A stretch of DNA of 64,000 nucleotides from IMG/VR virus record IMGVR_UViG_3300036715_003906, positions 124,001-188,000 of that record. The stretch is one strand, 5' to 3'. The position numbers and the translations under genes were made by a program. The notes beneath the pieces were generated by a model, which saw nothing but the letters and a program-made list of their open reading frames with translations, had not been told where the DNA came from and did no database searches. Of the stretch, positions 4,841-37,943 are shown piece after piece. Position 1 is the stretch's first letter, and every line of letters begins with the position of its first letter.

Positions 4841-5088
4841 TCAGATACACCGACGGCGTCGACCTCACCGAAGGGAATCCCCCGCAAAAGATCGAGGGAA
4901 GGCAGACCCGGGGCCTCCACCCCCACCCCACGGAGCCGCGGGAAAGGGTCCTTCGCGTCCAGGACCCGCTCCAGCCGGGTCAGGAGACCCACGCGCGGGC
5001 CCTCCACGCTCACGAGAATCCGTGGGGTGGACAGGCTGCCGTCGGGACGATGGTCGGGGTATTCAAGGGCGATCTCGAGGCGCTTCAG
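4841..5088 (-). CDS. Possible small gene with a non-ATG (CTG) start or a damaged gene
   Basis: Coding-like run (L/M)KRLEIALEYPDHRPDG... begins at CTG 5088; there is no in-frame stop before the next gene. Confidence 0.25.
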
Positions 5089-5101
5089 GGCCCCGAGCCT
5101 A

Positions 5102-5725
5102 TCACAAACCGACGAACTGGCGGGGCGTGAGGACCCCGCCCCCGACGTAGGGACCGAAGGCCGAGCGGATGCCCGTGCCGTAGCGAGGCTGCTGGAGGCC
5201 GCGGATGATGTTGACCGTGGCCTTGGCCTTCTCGATTTGCTTGTCGAACTGCTCCTGGGCGCTTCCGGCCGCGGCCTCGTACTTGCTGGCCTTGTCGATG
5301 TCGAGCGATATACCCCCGATGGAATACGAGTTGTGGGCCAGAATGCCGTTGGTGAGAACGAAGTTCTCTGGCCCCGGCACACAGAGGTCGTACATCTCCC
5401 CCGTGTGAGGCACCTCCATGACAAGAGATACCGCCGTGGCACCCGTCGAGCCGTCCTTGACGGTGGTGACCAGCGACCCTGGCGTCAACTTCAACGTCGT
5501 GATGGGGGCGAAGGGGAGGGCTGCAAACAGACTGTGATCCTCGGTCGCCACCACGGAAGCCCCGGTCTCAAGCGTGACCTGAAGGGCTCGCTTATGCGGC
5601 ACCTGATGCTTCATCACGTCCTTGATGGGGAACCACCCTGAGTGCCCAGAAGCGTCCACCGCTTGGGTCGTGAGCAACCCTTGTCGGAAGGCGTCACGAA
5701 TATCACGTCGGGTTTGCTCATCCAT
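5102..5725 (-). CDS. Fractured neck/adaptor protein, piece 3: split-intein IntC-2 (132 aa) fused to a 75-aa C-extein
   Basis: GGAGG RBS. Intein block B (ATEDHSLF), block F (MYDLCVPGPENF) and block G (ILAHN/S) are followed by extein SYSIGGISLDIDK. No block A is present. Confidence 0.85.
   Translation of the reverse strand: MDEQTRRDIRDAFRQGLLTTQAVDASGHSGWFPIKDVMKHQVPHKRALQVTLETGASVVATEDHSLFAALPFAPITTLKLTPGSLVTTVKDGSTGATAVSLVMEVPHTGEMYDLCVPGPENFVLTNGILAHNSYSIGGISLDIDKASKYEAAAGSAQEQFDKQIEKAKATVNIIRGLQQPRYGTGIRSAFGPYVGGGVLTPRQFVGL
5330..5725 (-). mobile_element. Split intein 2, C-fragment (IntC-2)
   Basis: Ends His-Asn (Asn codon 5330-5332) with Ser+1; carries TxxH block B, so the split is atypical (short N, long C). 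Confidence 0.85.
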
Positions 5726-5850
5726 GACACGCCTCCAGAATTTCGGTCACAACCGCCGCAAGGTCACCCCTGATACGGTGTTCAGGCACACGAAGCACCC
5801 GCCAACCACGATTCAACAAGTAGGTTGTCTTTTGAAACGGCACCTTCAGG
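5718..5850 (-). pseudogene. Remnant of a Vsr/DUF559-like homing endonuclease (C-terminal ~40 codons, frameshifted)
   Basis: Alternative frame reads ...KD[+1 nt]YLLNRGWRVLRVPEHRIRGDLAAVVTEILEACHG*, matching the Vsr/DUF559 C-terminal GW.VLR..EH.I motif. It is AT-richer than the flanks and lies exactly between IntN-2 and IntC-2. Confidence 0.7.
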
Positions 5851-6619
5851 GAGTCTGTGGTTCGCCATCCCCATGCACGATAGCAAAAAGCTCTGCTATG
5901 GGCATGGAAACTCGTCGGCCATCTGGCAGCCCGACCGTGACTTCGGTTTCTGGGGCCACAGAAAATTCATCAGCAACCCAGTTGATCCGGAGGGCGTTGA
6001 GCGCCCAGAACATCGCCCCGGTGAGGAGGAGCGACTTCCAGGACGGGTACTGCGTGTAGAGCTGGTCGAGGCTCTGGAAGGGCGTCATCGGAGGGTAGAG
6101 CGAGATGGTGTTCATCGACTGCTCCAGGTACTCCTTCAGCTCCTCGTCGAGCCAGATGTACCCGAAGACGCGGTTGAACTGCCGGATCGTCTCCTCGTGA
6201 GCCGGGGGCCGAAAGTGGTAGTTCCTGTCGGGACTATTACTGACGACCATCCCCGAGCGATACAGCACGAAGTTGTGCCAATCTTCCGCCGTCAGGTCGT
6301 ACATATACTGCCGAGAGGGTAGTCGCTCGACCCCCAAAACAGAGACGGCAGATTCGACCCCGGCCACGGTACTACCGGTGGCAAGCTGTTCCGTTTCGAC
6401 CTTGCTTGTGGGGGTCACAAACACACGATGCCCCCCTGTGAGCACAGAAGACCCTTGTGGGGTAGTCACCCGAAGGATCGTCTCCGGGCCAACCTCCGCA
6501 CGGTGAACGTGAACGACCCTCTTCCACTCCGCTTGCCCGAGAGGAGAGAGGGACCGAACCTTCAACGTACCCCGCTTGAAGGCTGCTCGAAGCCGATTTT
6601 GCTGGTCAAGGGTCAACAT
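5846..6619 (-). CDS. Fractured neck/adaptor protein, piece 2: IntC-1 (128 aa) + 91-aa middle extein + IntN-2 (38 aa)
   Basis: GGAGAGAG RBS before ATG 6619. Block B (TGGHRVF), F (MYDLTAEDWHNF) and G (VVSN/S), then extein SPDRNYHFRPP...WVADEF, then block-A-like SVAPETEVTVGLPDGRRVSMPIAELF. The ORF track extends it in frame to 7162 through the endonuclease remnant. Confidence 0.85.
   Translation of the reverse strand: MLTLDQQNRLRAAFKRGTLKVRSLSPLGQAEWKRVVHVHRAEVGPETILRVTTPQGSSVLTGGHRVFVTPTSKVETEQLATGSTVAGVESAVSVLGVERLPSRQYMYDLTAEDWHNFVLYRSGMVVSNSPDRNYHFRPPAHEETIRQFNRVFGYIWLDEELKEYLEQSMNTISLYPPMTPFQSLDQLYTQYPSWKSLLLTGAMFWALNALRINWVADEFSVAPETEVTVGLPDGRRVSMPIAELFAIVHGDGEPQTP
5849..5962 (-). mobile_element. 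Split intein 2, N-fragment (IntN-2, Ser1, 38 aa)
   Basis: SVAPETEVTV...MPIAELF is a block A pattern with Ser at position 1; removing it joins DEF to SYSIGG of piece 3. Confidence 0.8.
6236..6619 (-). mobile_element. Split intein 1, C-fragment (IntC-1)
   Basis: Blocks B, F and G; ends Ser-Asn (Asn codon 6236-6238) with Ser+1. Confidence 0.85.
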
Positions 6620-7162
6620 GAACGTCTCTCTCCGTCCGGACGATGAAGTCCCACCCCATGCGGGTGGCCTAGGAAGAAGCTGCCTGAAGTCGTCGTTGTA
6701 CCTTGTCGTCAGCAGGCAGCCCGAGAACCCAACTAGCTTTGACCTCGATGAGCGCCAACGTACCCGAGAGGCCCTACCCTCTGGACGTTGAGCAGCAAGA
6801 CGAAGAACCTCACGCTCTTCGGCTGAACGAATACGTCCGCGATGGAAGTCGAACGCACCAGAAGCCCAAGCATCCCGCATTCGATCCGACAACCACGGTT
6901 TCGTCCTCCCCCTACCCGCTTGTCCCACAGCAACCGCATTTGCGGTCCGGTTCGCCCGTGATGCGGCATTCCCGGTCGCTTGAGTCAACCGTTGAATGGC
7001 GGCGAGGGATAGGCCCGTCATGGCCTTCCTCCGACCCCAAGTGGCCCCTGCTGCGTGAAGCTCAGTCACCACAGCGACCCGTTTTTCCTGCACCCCTGGA
7101 GGGGGTCGCCCTGATTTGCTGAAGGATACCCACGAAATTCCGTGTTTCGCCAGCAGGGACAC
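6606..7162 (-). pseudogene. Decayed TnsA-like / PD-(D/E)XK homing endonuclease
   Basis: A basic N-terminal DNA-binding-like part is in the ORF frame. Another frame (6773 to 6606) reads GTLALIEVKASWVL...DKVQRRLQAASS*ATRMGWDFIVRTERD, i.e. the IEVK...GW.F...TE.D motif with an internal TAG. The middle of the nuclease appears deleted. Lies between IntN-1 and IntC-1. Confidence 0.7.
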
Positions 7163-7166
7163 CCGA

Positions 7167-7664
7167 TCAGGGTGTGGGTTGCAGGGCTTCCCAGAGAGCC
7201 CGGATAGAAACTACCATTTTCTCTCCGTCCACGTCAAGCTCGACCTCTTCCTCTTCCCCGAGGCAGTTGTCCCGGAGGAGCGTCCGCAGCCGGTGGATGA
7301 GGTCCACTTCGTTCGGGGTGAAGAGGAGCGGGGCCTGCGAACCCGACACCACCTGATCGATGACCTCGAACTCCTGCACCACCTGCTGGAGCTGCCCCCC
7401 GACCAGCTCCCGGAAGGACCACCGCACGCGGTAGAGCCCGAGGTTGGCGTCGAGGGGGATCACGATGCTCGCGTAGTATTCCCCGAGGGCGGGGTTCGCC
7501 GGCACGCGGGCAGGGTTCCCCACCGGGGCCTCCAGACCCGTCGTCACGTCGGCGATGGCGTAGCTGATCTCGGCGGCATTGACCGGGAGGTCCGCCGCGT
7601 TGGCCAGGTAGATGTGCAGGTCCTGGCGGCCGAGCTGCTGCCCGCGGAAGAACGCGACGCCCAT
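7167..7664 (-). CDS. Fractured neck/adaptor protein, piece 1: 133-aa N-extein (Ig/BppU-like) + IntN-1 (32 aa)
   Basis: Ends ...LRTLLRDN/CLGEEEEVELDVDGEKMVVSIRALWEAL, an intein block A starting at Cys (codon 7263-7265) with no rest of the intein in this gene. Confidence 0.85.
   Translation of the reverse strand: MGVAFFRGQQLGRQDLHIYLANAADLPVNAAEISYAIADVTTGLEAPVGNPARVPANPALGEYYASIVIPLDANLGLYRVRWSFRELVGGQLQQVVQEFEVIDQVVSGSQAPLLFTPNEVDLIHRLRTLLRDNCLGEEEEVELDVDGEKMVVSIRALWEALQPTP
7170..7265 (-). mobile_element. Split intein 1, N-fragment (IntN-1, Cys1, 32 aa)
   Basis: Block A CL.....V......SI..LW pattern; 9 acidic versus 2 basic residues. Confidence 0.8.
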
Positions 7665-7667
7665 GGC

Positions 7668-8225
7668 TCAGTTCATCCAGGTGCTGTCGACGTGGTGCTC
7701 GCCCTTCAGCGTCTTGCTGATCTGGCGGACCCACGTCTCGACCTCCGCCGCGAACCCGAAGGTCTGCTCGGCCTGGAGTACCTTGCCGCGCGTGTCCTTC
7801 GGGCGGAAGTGGTCCACCTCGCTCGACGACCACTGTCGGAGGGCGTTCGACAGCATCGTGATCGCCCCCTCCCGTTGCGCCTTCTCCTCGCCACGGAAAC
7901 CCTTGCCGATAGCCGACCTGTACTCCTTGACGAGCTTCTCCCCCGCCGCCGCGGCCTTCTCCCCCAGGTCATGGATGTCCGCGTAGGCCACGTCAAACTG
8001 CTTCTGGACCTTGGCGCCGCCCTTGCCCTCCAGCTTCTTGCTGAGGTCGTTCACCTCGGCGAGCGCTTTCTTGAGGTCCTTGCCGCGTGCCTCGGACTCC
8101 TTGGCCGCGTGGTCGGCTGCCGCCGGCTTGACCTCGGACTTCCCACCCACGGGAGTCTTCTCCTTGGCTGTGAGGTCCAGGGCGATGAGGGTGCGAACCA
8201 GCAGACGATGCGCGATCAGGGTCAT
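7668..8225 (-). CDS. Hypothetical helical protein
   Basis: Start reassigned to MTLIAHRLL (ATG 8225); Lys/Ala/Glu-rich. Confidence 0.55.
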   Translation of the reverse strand: MTLIAHRLLVRTLIALDLTAKEKTPVGGKSEVKPAAADHAAKESEARGKDLKKALAEVNDLSKKLEGKGGAKVQKQFDVAYADIHDLGEKAAAAGEKLVKEYRSAIGKGFRGEEKAQREGAITMLSNALRQWSSSEVDHFRPKDTRGKVLQAEQTFGFAAEVETWVRQISKTLKGEHHVDSTWMN

Positions 8226-8248
8226 CCCCCGGAGTCCTGACAAGAACT

Positions 8249-10363
8249 CTAAGAACCCCAGCCGTAGACCCGGCAGCGCCCCACCGGGTGACAGCCGGCG
8301 CGGGCCACGGCATCCTGCACCCGGAAGAGCTGCTCCGCCGCCTCGACCCCGGAGCACGGGGTACGGCGCCAGGACCAGACCACGACCCAGGCCCCCGGCT
8401 GACCGCACTCCCCGACCACCCCCGCGACGTGGTAGCAGCCCAGATCATCCTGAACCGGGGCACGAACCGCAGGCCCGATGAGCTGGCGCGTGCCGTCCGC
8501 CCGGACCTGGTAGAGCGCGTAGGAGAGCCACACAGGGGCCACAGGAGCCCCCGTGGCGTCGGTGAGGCACAAGGCCAGGTCTCCCGGCCCGAAGATCCCG
8601 CCCCACCCGAAGGGAGGCCCGGGGCACACCGGGGGGAGAACAGGCTGAAGAGGCCGGACCACCTCGACGTTGGCGACAAGGACGCCCACCCCCACCAGGG
8701 CCTCGGGGAAGTACCCGTAGAAGAACCCGGCCCCCGCGGCGTGACCTGCAACGAAGTGGAGGACACGGGGAGCGCCGTCGAGGACACTGTCCCCCGTGAT
8801 CTGCCCCGACCCCAGGAGCGGGGGCATGGCCAGAATGCCCTCCCCGAACACGTACCCCGAGGACAGGTACAGCTCCGCCGATGTCTTGATAGCTGCGAAC
8901 CCGAAGGTCTCCGCACTGAACCCCCCCTGCCCCAGCACGATCCTCGTCGTGAACGGGACCCCCAGAGCGGCCTCGCTCGGAATCCCCACGGCCCCCGCGA
9001 TGATGTCGATGTGCGCCGCCGGAGTCCCGACCGCCTCCTCACTGGGAACCCCCACGGGCCCCAGCAAGAAGGCGAGCGTCTCCAGGCCGAAGGCTTCCGC
9101 GCGGAGAGCCCCCTGACCGAAGAAGGTCATGTCAAGACGCCCGAGGCCGAAGGCTTCCGCGCTCGTGACGCCCACAGGGAGCCCGACCCGGATGGCCAGA
9201 GGCACCCCGAACGCGGCTCCTCCGGGAATCCCCGAGGGGCCCACCACGAAGGCCGAGAACGACGACCCGAAGGTCTCCGCGCTGACCGCGCCCGTGCCCC
9301 GCACCATCAAGCGCTCGAAGCCGACCCCGAAGGCTTGCCCGCTCAGCACCCCCTGCCCGAGCGGCACGGTGACCTGAAGGGGAATCCCTACCGCAGCCGC
9401 ACTCCCGACCCCCGTCGCAACCAGGCCGAGACGGATGGCCCCGAGGCCGCTCGTGAAGGCCGAGGGGGCCCCCTGGCCAAAGACCGTGAGCTGCTCGGTC
9501 GCCTGCCCCGACGCAAAGGCCCCAGGGATACCCGTGGGGAGCAGGTTGGCCGAGACCAGGGGCGTCCCAAGGGCGAGCCCCGATGGCACCCCCGACCCCA
9601 GAAGGGTGAGGCGCTCCGTGGCTGCCCCAGAGACAAAGGTACTCGCGGCGCCTTGCCCAAGAGGGAACAGCCTCTGGGTAGCGACACCGAAGGCTTGCGC
9701 CGGTGTCGCCCCGGGCGGGGACAGGTCCCGGCCCACCACGGCCTGGCCCGAGGCAAAGGCGCTTCCGGCCCCCGACCCGAAGACGGTGAGCTGCTCCGTG
9801 GCCGCACCGGCGGTGACGGCGCTCGCCGTCCCTTGGCCGAGAGGGATGAACCTCTGGGTCGCTGCCCCGAAGGCTTGCGCCGACAGCACCCCGGAGGGGG
9901 AGGCCACACGAACCGCGGTCGCCTGGCCCGAGGCAAAGGCACTCCCGGCCCCCTGCCCCAGTGCGCTACAGACCTCGGTCGCCGTCCCGGAAACGAACCC
10001 CGAGAGGACCCCCTGGGGCCCGAGGGCGCGCACGACGGTCGGGGTGCCGGCCGCCTGGGCCGAGGGCACCCCCGTGCCGAGCACCGTGAGCCTCTCGGTT
10101 GCGGCCCCGAAGGCTCCCGCACTGGGGGCCCCGGAGACCCGAGCGAGTCGGGTCGCCGAGGGCTGCCCGAAGGCCCCTCCGCTCGGGACACCCGCCCCGA
10201 GGACCGTGAGCCTCTCGGTTGCGGTGCCGAACGACTCCCCGCCCGCGACCCCGACGGCAAGGGGGATCAGGGCCACCGCGGCCTGACCAAAGGCCACGGC
10301 CGCCGCCACGCCCCGGGCGGCGAACGTGGTCGCTTCCGACAGGTCGAAGAGTAGGCGGCTCAT
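8249..10363 (-). CDS. Gly/Ala-rich repetitive virion (fibre-like) protein with a C-terminal Ig-like, Cys-rich domain
   Basis: Many imperfect G(V/I)PS..AFG repeats. A possible internal start exists at 8827 (GGAGG RBS, MPPLLGSG). Confidence 0.6.
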   Translation of the reverse strand: MSRLLFDLSEATTFAARGVAAAVAFGQAAVALIPLAVGVAGGESFGTATERLTVLGAGVPSGGAFGQPSATRLARVSGAPSAGAFGAATERLTVLGTGVPSAQAAGTPTVVRALGPQGVLSGFVSGTATEVCSALGQGAGSAFASGQATAVRVASPSGVLSAQAFGAATQRFIPLGQGTASAVTAGAATEQLTVFGSGAGSAFASGQAVVGRDLSPPGATPAQAFGVATQRLFPLGQGAASTFVSGAATERLTLLGSGVPSGLALGTPLVSANLLPTGIPGAFASGQATEQLTVFGQGAPSAFTSGLGAIRLGLVATGVGSAAAVGIPLQVTVPLGQGVLSGQAFGVGFERLMVRGTGAVSAETFGSSFSAFVVGPSGIPGGAAFGVPLAIRVGLPVGVTSAEAFGLGRLDMTFFGQGALRAEAFGLETLAFLLGPVGVPSEEAVGTPAAHIDIIAGAVGIPSEAALGVPFTTRIVLGQGGFSAETFGFAAIKTSAELYLSSGYVFGEGILAMPPLLGSGQITGDSVLDGAPRVLHFVAGHAAGAGFFYGYFPEALVGVGVLVANVEVVRPLQPVLPPVCPGPPFGWGGIFGPGDLALCLTDATGAPVAPVWLSYALYQVRADGTRQLIGPAVRAPVQDDLGCYHVAGVVGECGQPGAWVVVWSWRRTPCSGVEAAEQLFRVQDAVARAGCHPVGRCRVYGWGS

Positions 10364-27327: not shown

Positions 27328-30093
27328 TCAGGCTCCGTTCCTCGCCATTCGCGGCGTGAGAGATGGATTATTGGTGCCCAGAGCATAAAGCCGACCCTTG
27401 TCGAGAAGGGTCTCCTGCTCCGAGGGCGTCAGGTTACGTCCGATGAGGGTGCGACAGGCCGTGACAAAGGCCGTGTCGTCGGGGTACGACGTCACGGAAC
27501 CTGCCGCGAGGACAGCACGATAGAGGCGGCTCTCGCCCGCCTGCGTGATCCGCTTGCTCGACTCCAGGAAGCGAGCCACCGCCAGTACCTCGGGGCCCGT
27601 GAGGCACCCCGCGGAACGTACAGCTTGCCATCCACCGGACTTGTAATGGATGAGGCCGAGCAGGACGTTCAGGGTACGTCCATGATCACGCCCCGTGGCG
27701 ACATGGACACGGTGCGCGAGGAGGCGCCACGAGGGATACCGGAGCGCTTCCTTGAGGAGCGTATTGTTCCGGTTCTCGTTCGGCCGAGGTCCAGGTTCGG
27801 GCTTCATCTCCTCCCGGACCTTGTCGACCGCACGTTGACGCAGGGCGTCCGCCAGCTCGTCCACGGCCTTGCTGGCCGGGTCCCCGGTGGGGGCAGGAGC
27901 GGGCTTCTTGTCCATCCCGTCGTCGAACCCCTGGCCCTGCTGTCCGGGCTGCCCCTGCTGCCCCTGGGCCGCAGGGAAGGAGGCAGCCTTGCCCATGGCG
28001 CCGGTGAGCATGACCCGGGGCCCACCCGAGAAGGCGATGCTCATCTTGCGGCCGAGGTCAGCGACCTCCTCGGGGTTCAGGATGTCCCGGAGGACGGCAC
28101 CCTCGAAGGCGGGGTTGGCGACCCACGACGCCTCGATGAACTTGACCGACCCGGGCTCGGCCAGGACGTGCCCGCACAGCTCGGCGATCTTCCGCTTGCG
28201 ACCCAGGGCATCGACGAACTCGTTGCCCTTGAAGTAGTGGATATGGTTGCAGAGCTGGGTCTCGTCGTAGGCGACGTTGCCGCAGGCCGTGCAGATCGTG
28301 AACTCGACCTGGCAGTTGGAGACCCCGAAGCCATGCACCTGATACGAGTGGTCTTCCTCGACCTCGATGTCGTGGACGAAGCCCTCGTACACGAAGGACT
28401 CGATGCGGGTGATCGGGAAGATGACCTTGTCGTCGAGTGCCCGGAGATGCGGGTGCTTTTTGCGAGAACCCTCGCGTGGGGACTTGTCGGACACCCCCAT
28501 CAACATCGCCGAAGACGATTGAGGGAAGTAGATGTTGAAGGCCGCGAGCTTGCCCGTCTCGTCGTGACGAAGTGCCTGCCCGTTCACCACGGCCTCGGCG
28601 AAAGTCACCGTTCGGCCCCCAAACACGCAGTCTGCCCACACCGGGATGCCGCCTCGTACCGCCAGCGTATGAAGCTGGCACATGAGGTCGTAGGAGGTGG
28701 TCGTACCCACCGAGTGCCCGCCGCTGTGCTTGTGACCGTCCCCGTTGAGCCAAGCCCCAAGCAAATGCGCCTGGGATTCGACTGACCACTGCATGGCCTC
28801 GGGGCTCAGACGCTTTTGGTGGGAGTACTCACCCCCATGCTGCTTGAACCAAGCGGCGATGCCCTTCCCCGAGACGTGTACCGTTGCCGTGTTACGGTCT
28901 TCACGGTCCTGTACCCAAGGGGCACAACCGGGGAACTCCTCGCGAAGAAGCCCAACAACCTCTTCAACGAAGGTCTCCTTCTCAGCCAAGGAGAAGTTGA
29001 ACTGCACCTCGGACGGCACACCCTTGCTCTTGATGAAGCTGCCTTCGGCCAGGAAGTACCCGAGGAGCCGAGCCTTGGCGGACCCTGGGTCACCGATCAC
29101 ATCAGAGTCGAGCTTCGGGAAGACCACATAGTCCCCCACTCGCAATTCGTCGGCACGAACCTTCTCGACCTTGAGGCTCTGGATCTCCGTGAGCTTCTCC
29201 TGGCGAGCCTTGTATTCGTCGAGGGAGTAGCTGCCGTTCGGGTTGAGCACACGCTTGTCATGACCCCCCTTGAACCGCTTGGTCATCCGACGAACGGGGT
29301 CAGCATCCTTCGTCGAAAGAGCCTCCCCACACCCACACCCGCAAACAGACGCCGGGCGGAGGACGAAGAACGGGTGTGTGCCTGTGGCCTCGACGGCATC
29401 CGGCACCCCCTTGACCTTGATCCGTCGCATCTGCCAGCGACCACCACGGATCTGCTGGTTCAGCACCTCGCGAGCCCTGCCCTTGTGGGTCAGAACCATC
29501 GCACCGGGTCGAACCTCTTCGATGGGGAGACGAGTGCCGTCGGCCATCGTGACGGGAGTCCCCGGGAGGAAACAGCCCATGCTGAGGGTCTTCAGCTCCC
29601 GCCGCTGGATCGAGGAGATCAGGGGGCGGAACTTCCGGGCCGTCGCGATCAGGATGTCGATGTAGATCGAGTCCCCGATGTCCCGGCTGGCGGCGTCCAG
29701 GATCTTGCCCTTGCTCAGCTCGGGGATCTGGACGTGCTCGACGTAGTTCTCCCCGCCGATGAAGGTCTTGAAGCACGCGAGGAGCAGCTTGCGCTCCCAG
29801 CAGTCGTTGTTGTTGTTGACGTACTTGGACGTCGCGGGCGTCACCAGCCAGTCGGGGTAGCGCCGGTCGACCTCGAAGCCGTCCACCATCTGACGACCGA
29901 CCGGCTCCGGGGACACCTCCGTGTCCACCGAAGCGACGATCGTGCAGTGCGTGAGCATGAACTCACTGGGGTCGTACTGGTCGAGTACGATCCGGGAGGC
30001 TTGCTTGTTCCCGTGGACCCGGAGGTTCTCCCACCCGGCCGACGAGATGTCGGGCTTGACAATGGTCGCGTTGGCAAACTTACGGAAGGCCAT
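27328..30093 (-). CDS. Prohead (capsid maturation) protease with an intein
   Basis: Head-module position; after intein removal reads ...TLSMG-CQVEFTICTACGN...LCNH...FIEASWV.NPAF.GA. Confidence 0.8.
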   Translation of the reverse strand: MAFRKFANATIVKPDISSAGWENLRVHGNKQASRIVLDQYDPSEFMLTHCTIVASVDTEVSPEPVGRQMVDGFEVDRRYPDWLVTPATSKYVNNNNDCWERKLLLACFKTFIGGENYVEHVQIPELSKGKILDAASRDIGDSIYIDILIATARKFRPLISSIQRRELKTLSMGCFLPGTPVTMADGTRLPIEEVRPGAMVLTHKGRAREVLNQQIRGGRWQMRRIKVKGVPDAVEATGTHPFFVLRPASVCGCGCGEALSTKDADPVRRMTKRFKGGHDKRVLNPNGSYSLDEYKARQEKLTEIQSLKVEKVRADELRVGDYVVFPKLDSDVIGDPGSAKARLLGYFLAEGSFIKSKGVPSEVQFNFSLAEKETFVEEVVGLLREEFPGCAPWVQDREDRNTATVHVSGKGIAAWFKQHGGEYSHQKRLSPEAMQWSVESQAHLLGAWLNGDGHKHSGGHSVGTTTSYDLMCQLHTLAVRGGIPVWADCVFGGRTVTFAEAVVNGQALRHDETGKLAAFNIYFPQSSSAMLMGVSDKSPREGSRKKHPHLRALDDKVIFPITRIESFVYEGFVHDIEVEEDHSYQVHGFGVSNCQVEFTICTACGNVAYDETQLCNHIHYFKGNEFVDALGRKRKIAELCGHVLAEPGSVKFIEASWVANPAFEGAVLRDILNPEEVADLGRKMSIAFSGGPRVMLTGAMGKAASFPAAQGQQGQPGQQGQGFDDGMDKKPAPAPTGDPASKAVDELADALRQRAVDKVREEMKPEPGPRPNENRNNTLLKEALRYPSWRLLAHRVHVATGRDHGRTLNVLLGLIHYKSGGWQAVRSAGCLTGPEVLAVARFLESSKRITQAGESRLYRAVLAAGSVTSYPDDTAFVTACRTLIGRNLTPSEQETLLDKGRLYALGTNNPSLTPRMARNGA
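28315..29574 (-). mobile_element. Intein (420 aa) with LAGLIDADG homing endonuclease
   Basis: CFLPGTPV (block A), ATGTHPF (B), LLGYFLAEG and LLGAWLNGDG (C, E), VHDIEVEEDHSY (F), VSN/C (G). Confidence 0.92.
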
Positions 30094-34568: not shown

Positions 34569-37500
34569 TTAGGCGCGGCGGGACTGGGGCGGGGGAAAGG
34601 GGACCGCCTTTGGCCGGGGCTTCGTCGAGGCAAAGCGGTTGCTGTCCTCCCCCTCGGCCGGCGGGGGGGTCAAGGTGAGACCGAGGCTCGTGGCGATCTT
34701 CTCCTTGACGTCCGACCCCTCGGCGAGCATCCGGCCCACTTCACCGTAGATGGCCCGCGTCACCTCGTTGAAGGTGGCGTCGTTGACGGTGAACATATCC
34801 TTTTCGAGCTTCTGCCGGGTGTCGTGCGGGTCGATGTTGAACATCTCCAGGATGACGTCGATCGAGACCGACCCCTTCTGGTACAGGTTGAACAGCGCGT
34901 CGAACGTGTCCTGGCTGTCCCGGAGCGGCAGGCGGGTGAAGCTGAGGGACGGGTAGAGGACCACTTCCTCGCCCCACTCGTCGAGTTCGATGAAGCCCTT
35001 GCGCCGGGCCACGGGCTTGAACAGGTACTCCTCGACGTACTCCTGCAAGATCTCCCGCAGAAACAGGTAGCGCTGGTTGATCACTTCGAGCTTGAGCCGG
35101 TCGCCCGAGTAGAGGGTCTCGCCCGAGAGAAGGCTCTCGGTCACGCCCAGGCCGGTGCGCAGGTGGCGCTCCGTGATCTCGTACTCCGAGGACAGGTCGA
35201 GGAGCCTGTCGCGGCTCCCCATCTCCTCCCAGTGCAGCTCGTAGTTGACGATGATCGAGTAGTCGGGGTCGACGAGGGCGTAGTCCACCTGATCGCGAAG
35301 GGCCTCGACGTCGTTTTCGCTGAGGTCGTCGGCCCAGATGATCCGCTTCGGGGTCATCGCCCGGCTGGCGATCTGGGTCTGCGCCTGGCGGAGCTTCTCC
35401 CGGTAGTACAGGGTGCGAAGGCAGTTGGAAGTACGCGAAAGTCCAGCGAAAAACGAGTGGTCTTCGTGGACGTTGAGGCTGTAGACCGGCCCCTCGTGCA
35501 TGGCCGTCGAGACCGATTGCACCCGGTAGAAGAGCTTCCCCTCGTGCTCGACGTGCCGTGACCCCGAGCGCCCGTCCTTCCACTCGTCAGGATCTTGCCG
35601 CTTGGCAAGGAAACCCGACTCGAAGAACGTCTTGACGGAAGGACCATGCGTAAAGTGAACGGAGTGCAAGGGCTTCGCCCAAGCCCTCTCTCCGTTCGCC
35701 TGCCTGACCCAACGTTCCTTCGTAGGCTTCGTCTTGGAGACCGGGATGCCGAGGGACGTGCAGAGCAAGAAAATCTGATCCATAAGCACATGGTTCGTAC
35801 CGTTGAACCGGACGCAGATGCTCCCGTCTTTCTTGCGGACGACATCCCCATCGGAGTCACAGAAACCTCGAAGGAGACCGAGCAAGAACCCCTTGTTGGC
35901 GTCGAAGACCCACGCGGGCAGGTGTTTGTCCTCGCTCGTGTGCCCGAAATTTGCGGCCATCCAACGCACGAGAGCGTCCTGGTAGCCGTCCATGTGGACC
36001 CCAGCCCCAGCATGGCTCTCCGACCACACGACCTTGAGCACGTCGAGCATCGGCTTGATCTGCTCTTGGATCGCCTTAACGGACGCGGGCTCGTTGGGGC
36101 CGTAGGTGAACCCGAGCGTACCGTAGTCGAGCCCCTCGTGCTTCGTGATGTGCCCGTCCCCGAGCCAGAAACCGAGGAAGTACCCGAAACCTGCAACCAG
36201 CGGGAGCACCCGCATGGGGAAGGTCTTGGTGTGGGCGGCGCTCGTCGGGGCTTTCAAGCCGGACTTGTTGGGCGGGAAGTTGAGGGTCTTGTCCTTGGCG
36301 ACCGTCACCCCGTACCCGAGCGACACGAGTTGGGACCGGATCTCCTTGAGCGTGACCGGATGAAGGCCGAAGCGTTCGCAGACTTCGGCCGAACGCATCG
36401 CCACGGGCTCCGTGAGCGTCGATGCCCATTCGAGGATGACGTTGAGGTCGTTGGTGCGACCGACCTTTCGAGGGTCCGTCTGTTCCTTCTCATACCTGAC
36501 CGTGAACGAGTGCGTCGTCCGGTCCACGACCTCCCAGCGAAGGTCTGAGGTACCTCCAGAGCGACGGGCACGGTAGTCGGCCTCGACCCCGTGCATGAAC
36601 TCCGCGAGATCGACGCCCCCAACCAACGAACCAGAAAGCGGGACCTGCGCGACCTGAAGGTAATCCCCAGCCCGGATGTCCTCCGCAGGAAGCTCGACCA
36701 CGGACCCGTCGCGAAGCACGGGGTACTTGTGGTCCTTCGTGCAGCCCACTGGCGGCTCGATCTTGGCGACGTGAAGAAGCGCGATCTCCTCCGCCACGGG
36801 ACGGACACCGACCTCGAACTCACGCCACGCCCCCGTGTGCGAAAGCACTCGATCCGTGTCGGGATCGAGATCCTCGATGTGGACTTGCCGAACCACCCCG
36901 TCCCGTTTCACGAGAACCGGGGTGCCTGCGATGTGGCAGCGGTCGAGGATGGACTGGCCCAGCTCGTCCCCCGCACCCTTCCGGGCCGAGAGCATGTGGA
37001 CGAAGGACCCCTCGTCCGGGTCGTCGCCGAGGGGGATCAGGTGCCCGTTCTCGATGTAGTCCCGGATCTCGGCAGGGATCTCCTCGACCATCTCCGACGC
37101 AATGGGGTCGCCCATCTTCGCCTGCTGGATGAGGGCCCGATCCCGGTCCGAGGGGATCAGCTCGACCCGCATCTTGTCCGAGAAGTCGAAGGTCGTGACC
37201 TTGACCTGGTCGATCGGGAAAATGATGATCCGGTCCCACCCCTTGTAGTGCTTCCGGTAGTAGGCGTCCTCCTCCTCCTCGCGGGTGTCCTTCTCCACCC
37301 TCTCGACGTCGTCGACCTCGCGGGCCCCGTGCTCGTCAACCACGCTGCGGCGGACCTTCTTGGGCTCGTAGCCGACGTCGTCAGGAAGCGGGACCTGGTG
37401 GTCCTCGGCGAAGATGGCGACGTTGCCGTCCAGCCAGTAGTGGCGGACGATGGTCGCCAGCCGCTGGAACAGCTTGACCTTCTTCGACATCTTCTGGAAG

Positions 37501-37943
37501 AAGGAGAGGATGTACTTGCCGTACTGCTCGGGGCTCGTGAAGCCCTCGGGGTGCGAGATGGGCTTCGGGGCCGCCAGTCGCACCTTCGACAACGGCAGCT
37601 CCGTGTGCAGGTCGATCGACTGCGCGACGATGGGCTCGGAGTTGTAGAAGTGCCGGTAGATCTCCCGCTTCTCGCGGAGAGACTGCGGCAGCTCCAGGAA
37701 GTCGGTCGAGAGCTGGGGGGAGAAGAAGGACCCGTTCTGGGCCAGACTCGTGTAGCCGCCCATGCCCCCGGCGTAGTTCGCCGTGCGGGTGTTCCCTGCC
37801 AGACCCTCGCGGCGAGCCCGACGCTCCAGGGGGGTCAGGGGCATCATCTGCACAGGGGACGCCACCCGGGGGTGGTTCCGACGCATGTGGGGGTCGAGGG
37901 CAGCCTGAACGGGCCGGGCCGAGGTGTAAGGGCGTGGGGGCAT
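34569..37943 (-). CDS. Portal protein with an intein
   Basis: Downstream of TerL; R...RHFY...PIV...IDL..ELPLS and YW..GN motifs; C-terminal L.F..L.L.D. GAGGAG RBS. Confidence 0.85.
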   Translation of the reverse strand: MPPRPYTSARPVQAALDPHMRRNHPRVASPVQMMPLTPLERRARREGLAGNTRTANYAGGMGGYTSLAQNGSFFSPQLSTDFLELPQSLREKREIYRHFYNSEPIVAQSIDLHTELPLSKVRLAAPKPISHPEGFTSPEQYGKYILSFFQKMSKKVKLFQRLATIVRHYWLDGNVAIFAEDHQVPLPDDVGYEPKKVRRSVVDEHGAREVDDVERVEKDTREEEEDAYYRKHYKGWDRIIIFPIDQVKVTTFDFSDKMRVELIPSDRDRALIQQAKMGDPIASEMVEEIPAEIRDYIENGHLIPLGDDPDEGSFVHMLSARKGAGDELGQSILDRCHIAGTPVLVKRDGVVRQVHIEDLDPDTDRVLSHTGAWREFEVGVRPVAEEIALLHVAKIEPPVGCTKDHKYPVLRDGSVVELPAEDIRAGDYLQVAQVPLSGSLVGGVDLAEFMHGVEADYRARRSGGTSDLRWEVVDRTTHSFTVRYEKEQTDPRKVGRTNDLNVILEWASTLTEPVAMRSAEVCERFGLHPVTLKEIRSQLVSLGYGVTVAKDKTLNFPPNKSGLKAPTSAAHTKTFPMRVLPLVAGFGYFLGFWLGDGHITKHEGLDYGTLGFTYGPNEPASVKAIQEQIKPMLDVLKVVWSESHAGAGVHMDGYQDALVRWMAANFGHTSEDKHLPAWVFDANKGFLLGLLRGFCDSDGDVVRKKDGSICVRFNGTNHVLMDQIFLLCTSLGIPVSKTKPTKERWVRQANGERAWAKPLHSVHFTHGPSVKTFFESGFLAKRQDPDEWKDGRSGSRHVEHEGKLFYRVQSVSTAMHEGPVYSLNVHEDHSFFAGLSRTSNCLRTLYYREKLRQAQTQIASRAMTPKRIIWADDLSENDVEALRDQVDYALVDPDYSIIVNYELHWEEMGSRDRLLDLSSEYEITERHLRTGLGVTESLLSGETLYSGDRLKLEVINQRYLFLREILQEYVEEYLFKPVARRKGFIELDEWGEEVVLYPSLSFTRLPLRDSQDTFDALFNLYQKGSVSIDVILEMFNIDPHDTRQKLEKDMFTVNDATFNEVTRAIYGEVGRMLAEGSDVKEKIATSLGLTLTPPPAEGEDSNRFASTKPRPKAVPFPPPQSRRA
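35424..36938 (-). mobile_element. Intein (505 aa) with LAGLIDADG homing endonuclease
   Basis: CHIAGTPV (A), CTKDHKY (B), FLGFWLGDG and LLRGFCDSDG (C, E), VYSLNVHEDHSF (F), TSN/C (G). Confidence 0.92.

Follow-up and report, generated by a model that had tools for sequence, protein, structure and literature searches.

A phage structural gene in a 64,000-nt stretch of DNA (positions 124,001 to 188,000 of IMG/VR virus record IMGVR_UViG_3300036715_003906; the window hereafter) is divided into three consecutive genes by two split inteins. We consider it probable that this is a doubly fractured head-to-tail adaptor gene whose pieces are joined by cognate intein pairs into one product of ~299 aa. The anatomy of the gene is established with high confidence. 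The record comprises 251 kb at ~67% G+C, and its completeness is ~53%.

The three genes, all on the minus strand, tile a single host protein of ~299 aa (coordinates refer to the window). Gene 1 (7167-7664, 165 aa) encodes the N-extein in its residues 1-133 (7266-7664), an Ig-like β-sandwich plus the first helix that ends in LLRDN, followed by the 32-aa intein fragment IntN-1 (7170-7265), which begins with Cys1 (CLGEEEE...) and runs to the stop codon at 7167-7169. Gene 2 (5846-6619, 257 aa) starts with IntC-1 (6236-6619, 128 aa), which has its own ATG with a GGAG Shine-Dalgarno-like motif upstream, contains block B (LTGGH) and block F (MYDLT..WHNF) and ends in VVSN. It continues with the 91-aa middle extein (5963-6235, SPDRNYHF...ADEF) and closes with IntN-2 (5849-5962, 38 aa; Ser1, SVAPETEV...; stop codon 5846-5848). 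Gene 3 (5102-5725, 207 aa) consists of IntC-2 (5330-5725, 132 aa) and the C-extein (5105-5329; Ser+1, SYSIGG...; stop codon 5102-5104), which supplies 75 host-protein residues. IntC-2 has its own ATG with GGAGG 6 nt upstream; its motifs are an [RK]H NX-type VMKH, block B ATEDH, block F MYDLCVPGPENF and the end ILAHN. Frames, start codons and Shine-Dalgarno-like motifs are intact in all three pieces.

The intein boundaries were set by intein-free homologs (P0122, P0135 and others). These read LLRDN/NPDRNYHF across site 1 and ADEF/xYSIGG across site 2 (the slash marks the junction), from which the insertion points follow as N/S for intein 1 and F/S for intein 2. The preliminary description of this DNA had already read IntC-1, a 91-aa extein and IntN-2 from one polypeptide at 5846-6619, and both the order and the coordinates are confirmed. 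Intein 1 uses Cys1/Ser+1 as nucleophiles and intein 2 Ser1/Ser+1. The Pfam family Intein_splicing matches the C-terminal blocks of both IntC fragments with E-values of 1.6e-5 and 1.3e-7, both below Pfam's own cut-off, and IntC-1 and IntC-2 match each other with an E-value of 1.9e-9 and 34% identity. As block B (TxxH) lies inside each IntC, both inteins are split near the N-terminus; they are naturally split at an atypical N-terminal site, with IntN and IntC on separate genes.

Both inteins carry class 1 motifs, namely block B (LTGGH in intein 1, ATEDH in intein 2), the block F Asp (MYDLT, MYDLC) and the terminal Asn (..SN, ..HN); the penultimate His is absent from intein 1. The T, H, D and terminal N, as well as the Ser1 of IntN-2, are invariant across 28 middle genes. 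We ruled out that intein 2, with its Cys in MYDLC, is a class 3 intein, as it has the block F Asp and a conserved Ser1. Across relatives, family 1 (the inteins of site 1) is marked by C-[VLI]-G-x-E-E, DLWEAL, LTGGHRVF, MYDLT..WHNF and mostly a VSN end, and family 2 by S-[VLI]-x-G-[DE]-T, ELYxI, [RK]H, T-x-DHSLF, YDL[SC]VPGPENF and an AHN end. A His occupies the NX column in 29/29 family-2 rows, in most of them preceded by R or K, and Cys1 inteins of family 1 have Ala, Asn or another non-His residue there. The [RK]H of family 2, which lies between blocks A and B, appears to be the counterpart of the NX motif, which has been reported as a feature confined to Ser1 inteins (PMC10189870).

Structural alignments of the gene 2 AlphaFold model with solved inteins start at about residue 23 of the latter (Z 8-11.9, 104-122 residues aligned), and the VidaL structure is among the matches. 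IntC-1 is assigned to the HINT fold by this model, and IntC-2 is presumed to share it, being 31% identical to IntC-1 and having the same blocks. The related N-terminal helix of the two IntC fragments that the preliminary description had pointed out is real, as it spans residues 4-15 in the gene 2 model and its AFxxGxL motif is kept in both IntC families. IntN-2 is folded in the model with a pLDDT of ~95, which would fit docking into the vacant IntC-1 slot, a single-chain model being without a measure of partner specificity.

By its predicted fold the host protein is a phage head-to-tail adaptor (neck) protein. When gene 1 was the query of a full HMMER search, homologs of ~300 aa were retrieved in which both sites are intein-free (P0122, P0135, P0143 and others), and the window pieces tile P0122 at residues 1-130, 127-223 and 214-295 with nothing missing. 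The AlphaFold model of P0122 (pLDDT 79) comprises an N-terminal Ig-like sandwich and a helical C-terminal part. Its residues 113-276 match the adaptors of a dozen phage portal-tail structures (Z 9-11.3, most of the target chain covered), whose fold comprises a helical core, a β-hairpin and a C-terminal tail; Z is 8-11.3 for the adaptors of Pa223, KHP30, A4, GP4, T4 gp13/14, SU10, PhiM1 and P1. This fold was recognised solely by a structure search other than Foldseek; Foldseek against the PDB mostly matched the N-terminal Ig-like domain, the BFVD matches were all phage proteins without characterisation, e.g. gp165 of Bacillus phage G, and Pfam and PHROGs gave nothing usable for the extein pieces and P0122. 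The sole cultured-phage relative in GenBank phage records is annotated as a head-tail connector protein. Upstream of the adaptor gene lies a tail-protein-like gene, and the portal gene is ~27 kb away.

Site 1 is a conserved loop following the first helix of the host protein, and site 2 lies at the end of a long helix, ahead of the β-hairpin. The middle extein between them is the best-conserved part of the protein, holding 17 of the 33 columns that do not vary in the alignment of middle genes, and in the model it forms the helical core of the adaptor-like fold, with its N-terminal ~25 residues predicted to be flexible. The adaptor is probably essential for virion assembly. There is no second copy of its gene in the 251-kb record; a second, intact copy may lie in the missing part of the genome.

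Adjacent to the adaptor gene, 8249-10363 (minus strand) encodes a repeat-rich protein of 704 aa that matches the PHROG minor tail protein (E 1e-19); it ends in a domain that shares 28-29% identity with the adaptor's N-terminal Ig-like domain, and the same upstream paralog is found in many relatives. Further inteins are present in the window. A 1124-aa portal protein (34569-37943, minus strand; PHROG portal, E 1.6e-19) contains a contiguous intein with a LAGLIDADG endonuclease domain, and the same structural module probably holds a fourth intein in a 921-aa protein (27328-30093, minus strand) with Hint/intein matches at about residues 173-588.

The gaps between the three genes contain what is left of two homing endonuclease (HE) genes. 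Genes 1 and 2 are separated by 547 nt that are open in the frame of gene 2, and this stretch shows 57% identity with residues 14-166 of a protein of 312 aa encoded at the same place in a relative (L003/L004). This protein, HE-1, carries the nuclease motif PD...EVK in its C-terminal part and gave a weak TnsA-like match in Pfam. Its remnant in the window, from a PD-(D/E)xK, TnsA-like homing endonuclease (6620-7189, minus strand), retains residues ~5-191, the DNA-binding part, now in frame with IntC-1; of the nuclease domain a frameshifted scrap with the EVK motif remains at 6672-6764, and the rest is deleted. Genes 2 and 3 lie 120 nt apart, and all that survives there of HE-2, a DUF559/Vsr-like homing endonuclease of 313 aa, is its last 38 residues (5721-5834, minus strand), which share 84% identity with residues 276-313 encoded by the intact L003 gene. 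L003 has full-length endonuclease genes in both gaps, and intact endonuclease genes of ~312 aa occur in L003, L011, L014 and L015. The window locus has the arrangement of a fractured gene, in which the gene for a free-standing homing endonuclease sits between split intein halves (Dassa et al. 2009, PMC2677866), realised twice in one gene with both endonuclease genes decayed. Five other loci have lost the endonuclease and kept the intein (L020, L035, L007, L012, L018), and this combination is the expected late stage of a homing cycle. With endonuclease remnants in both gaps, the layout is a by-product of two homing-endonuclease invasions and was not selected for three-fragment ligation, contrary to one of the two possibilities offered by the preliminary description.

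Joining of the pieces by read-through or frameshifting was ruled out, since the gaps measure 547 and 120 nt and contain endonuclease remnants, and the IntC halves have their own starts. Because the HE-1 remnant has no stop before IntC-1, an ORF of 438 aa that opens with GTG at 7162 (5846-7162, minus strand) fuses ~181 residues of the HE-1 DNA-binding region to IntC-1, the extein and IntN-2. The ATG at 6619 has its own GGAG motif and coincides with a conserved Met of the relatives, and judging from these start signals both the 438-aa fusion and the 257-aa gene 2 product might be made. A scan of 4900-8500 found no sigma-70 promoter and one minus-strand terminator-like site, which lies inside gene 2, is weak and is within the number expected by chance.

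Contigs without a mismatch from three metagenome samples (microbial mat, sediment) span the four junctions, i.e. the gene 1 stop, the gene 2 start and stop and the gene 3 start, although the best-matching sample may be the window's own assembly source and is hence not independent support. At 6189-6223 contigs from the same metagenomes (runs X1, X2, X4) diverge at site 1 into ILLRDNNPDR, by their sequence a co-occurring relative whose site 1 is intein-free.

A database search with gene 2 gave 461 relatives, and among the best 120 protein clusters 30 have the IntC-1/extein/IntN-2 layout. A scan of IMG/VR yielded 67 loci of related huge phages, mostly on contigs of 100-530 kb, and each locus was annotated by means of the nine pieces. 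Each site occurs in three states: empty, with a contiguous mini-intein, or with a split intein. In the 57 non-redundant loci both sites are split in seven (window, L003, L011, L014, L015, L020, L035), site 1 only in 16 and site 2 only in 14, and both are empty in 11; double splits were not avoided in this set (Fisher p 0.58). HE-1 matches were all at site 1 and HE-2 matches all at site 2. The full-length endonuclease is kept at 13/23 split sites 1 and 19/21 split sites 2, with partial or no genes at the others; in L020 both endonucleases are lost, leaving short gaps that resemble the second gap of the window. The nearest three-piece relatives are 60-70% identical in protein, an identity at which synonymous sites would be saturated.

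One locus has the pieces in permuted order. In L063 (2934-4381) the gene for IntC-2 and the C-extein is upstream of the gene for ExtN-ExtM-IntN-2, and an endonuclease is absent between them. Such an order makes sense only with trans-splicing, the pieces being joined after translation. Site 1 of L063 is empty and retains Ser+1 (LLRDNSPDR), possibly the footprint of a lost intein. At this site intein-free proteins mostly read LRDN-N-PDRNY, whereas intein-bearing alleles and some empty ones (P0057, L063) read LRDN-S-PDRNY; since Ser is needed at +1 for splicing and most intein-free proteins have N, Ser+1 would mark present or past occupancy. Other arrangements also occur. HE-2 is fused in frame to IntC-2 in L067 (3868-5448) and L070 (4443-6002), and in their relative L066 (3617-5146) the intein is contiguous, its split-site loop being extended by a helical insert of ~50 aa; these three forms look like intermediates between bifunctional and split inteins. 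P0153 (441 aa) has a family-2-like Ser1 intein at a third site, NPDRNY/TFRPP, five residues past site 1, and also ends in a split IntN-2.

In a tree of 57 reconstituted inteins, calculated with the split-site columns removed, families 1 and 2 form two clades (SH-aLRT 100 each), and neither family was found at the other's site. Contiguous and split forms are interspersed, requiring at least three changes in family 1 and at least eight in family 2, of which well-supported branches alone force just one and three, respectively. Near-identical site 2 inteins are contiguous in one locus and split with a full endonuclease in another (L023 vs L035, L006 vs L038). Together with the interspersion these pairs indicate that splitting and re-joining are recent and repeated. 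The contiguous intein of L023 retains the Met of the IntC start (..EERMMDN..), which hints that this form arose through deletion of the endonuclease gene.

We propose the following course for the window locus. Two homologous, anciently diverged class 1 mini-inteins at the fixed sites LLRDN/S and ADEF/S would each have been split at the same loop, just past the first helix, by its own kind of free-standing homing endonuclease gene. Decay of both endonuclease genes would have left three genes, each with its own ribosome-binding site, for the polypeptides ExtN-IntN1, IntC1-ExtM-IntN2 and IntC2-ExtC. IntN-1 would pair with IntC-1 and IntN-2 with IntC-2, and splicing would begin with an acyl shift, N-S at Cys1 of intein 1 and N-O at Ser1 of intein 2, followed by transesterification onto Ser+1, cyclisation of the terminal Asn and an O-N shift. 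The product would be a single adaptor of ~299 aa with the junctions LLRDN-SPDRNYHFR and ADEF-SYSIGGISLDIDK.

Tandem ligation would require that the two halves within gene 2 do not react with each other. In split-intein circular ligation of peptides and proteins (SICLOPPS) the target is placed between IntC and IntN in one polypeptide. Gene 2 has the same order; however, the halves in SICLOPPS are cognate and cyclisation is intended, whereas those of gene 2 stem from two inteins and cyclisation would be a side reaction. With a cross-reactive pair the middle piece would be cyclised intramolecularly and assembly starved. The reasoning of the preliminary description that in this topology the inteins must discriminate or make by-products is thus sound. 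Cross-talk is a real question, since charge permits the IntN-2/IntC-1 pairing and cross-reaction is most frequent among split inteins with a short IntN (PMC3443213; PMC7090010).

The charge counts of the preliminary description are right (nine D/E and two K/R in IntN-1, six D/E and two R in IntN-2), and the trend is family-wide, with mean net charges of -6.9 for IntN-1, -4.7 for IntN-2, -6.4 for IntC-2 and +3.0 for the first 45 residues of IntC-1. In the window the net charges are -7 for IntN-1, -4 for IntN-2, -4 for IntC-2 and +4 for IntC-1 (+6 in its first 45 residues). On these values IntN-1 and IntC-1 would make a classic complementary charge pair. As a specificity determinant, which it had been suggested to be, charge explains one half of the discrimination only: pairing of the acidic IntN-1 with the acidic IntC-2 (-7 vs -4), which would skip the middle piece, is disfavoured, but IntN-2 on the basic IntC-1 (-4 vs +4) appears electrostatically permissive for cyclisation.

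The reading that competes best with orthogonal pairs is that the inteins cross-react appreciably, IntN-2/IntC-1 cyclising the 91-aa piece and/or IntN-1/IntC-2 joining ExtN to ExtC, to give alternative products that are possibly useful. We regard this as unlikely. The topology allows it, as do the basic IntC-1 and acidic IntN-2 and the published precedent in short-IntN inteins; fold, split site and AFxxGxL helix are common to both inteins, IntN-2 is confidently folded in the gene 2 model, and with the flexible ~25 N-terminal residues of the middle extein a steric block is not obvious. Cyclisation would, however, drain a probably essential structural protein, yet the layout recurs in diverged phages and is not avoided. 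Moreover, the families do not mix between sites, and conserved IntN residues differ between them (GEE in family 1 vs GDT in family 2, W vs Y/H in the helix). Finally, no other part of the host protein is as well conserved as the middle extein, and protein-level alternative splicing, the second branch offered by the preliminary description, is unlikely for a piece with this share of the invariant columns that forms the adaptor's helical core.

The comparative evidence favours the branch of an orthogonal pair, because there are two site-bound clades, a recurrent double split, invariant catalytic residues and a single gene copy. In addition, identity between the families is low (21-38% between co-resident IntN halves, 25-34% between co-resident IntC halves), and split inteins at ~35% identity are strictly orthogonal elsewhere (PMC12707363). 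From this we infer, with moderate confidence, that the two intein pairs are orthogonal, and that both splicing reactions run, with cyclisation or skipping of the middle piece being minor. It would be surprising if discrimination were so incomplete that a measurable share of the gene 2 product is diverted from tandem ligation into intramolecular IntN-2/IntC-1 splicing; if it were, infected cells would contain a natural backbone-cyclised protein of 91 residues or an ExtN-ExtC isoform that lacks the middle.

That the locus is a decaying, non-functional gene of a phage that is defective or has another adaptor gene is very unlikely. Both homing endonuclease genes are wrecked and the record is about half complete, but the three pieces have intact frames, starts and Shine-Dalgarno-like motifs, all catalytic residues are in place, the homolog is tiled without missing parts and the identical sequence is found in three samples. 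The loss of the endonucleases, as set out above, is what a late homing cycle leaves and recurs in the same five loci. Highly improbable is an adaptor that is a three-chain complex without peptide-bond formation, with the intein halves serving as non-covalent docking domains only: a fragmented ribonucleotide reductase is reported to assemble through interaction domains that derive from a mobile element (PMC3045599), but Cys1/Ser1, TxxH, the block F Asp, the terminal Asn and Ser+1 are conserved in both families, a constraint not expected if the chemistry were dispensable, and near-identical inteins are contiguous, where splicing is obligatory (L023/L035, L006/L038).

Fractured genes, atypically split inteins, Ser1 inteins and engineered tandem trans-splicing are already known. 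The window locus agrees with the described fractured genes (PMC2677866) in the order N-part plus IntN, endonuclease, IntC plus C-part on one strand, in its phage/metagenomic setting, and in HE-2, which is of the Vsr-like/DUF559 kind introduced in that paper. It differs from them in that the gene is fractured twice, into three pieces, that the split site is the atypical N-terminal loop and not the canonical endonuclease insertion site, that the host is a structural protein and not an enzyme of DNA metabolism, that the endonuclease of site 1 is a PD-(D/E)xK, TnsA-like protein, and that both endonucleases are decayed. With the atypically split short-IntN inteins AceL-TerL, GOS-TerL, VidaL and PolB16 OarG (PMC10189870) the inteins share a short IntN (32 and 38 aa here, 15-25 aa there) and a long IntC with block B, and intein 2 further resembles PolB16 in having Ser1/Ser+1 and the [RK]H NX motif. 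The host gene and the intein families are different, two such inteins are co-resident in one gene, and almost the same intein is found in nature both contiguous and split. In engineered tandem trans-splicing for three-segment labelling (PMC12707363) the middle fragment likewise consists of the IntC of pair A, a segment and the IntN of pair B, and mutual orthogonality is required; the engineered pairs are unrelated or distantly related and were assayed for orthogonality, whereas the pair in the window is natural, homologous and presumably orthogonal. In the full-text literature searched, which included Dassa et al. and had most subscription journals outside its scope, we found neither a natural gene with two split inteins nor two homologous short-IntN split inteins that reside together, each accompanied by an endonuclease family of its own.

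The locus would be a natural counterpart of the chemists' three-fragment ligation, with two split inteins acting on one middle fragment. Both IntN fragments are short and thus synthesis-friendly, and one of the inteins has serine-only nucleophiles, which are rare and sought-after. If the pair is orthogonal despite the shared ancestry, fold, split site and helix, comparison of the families should reveal determinants of partner specificity in short-IntN inteins. At its two sites the family displays empty positions, contiguous mini-inteins, endonuclease-split inteins, endonuclease-IntC fusions, decayed endonucleases with a fixed split and a permuted gene order, and together these stages provide direct comparative evidence on the fractured-gene model.
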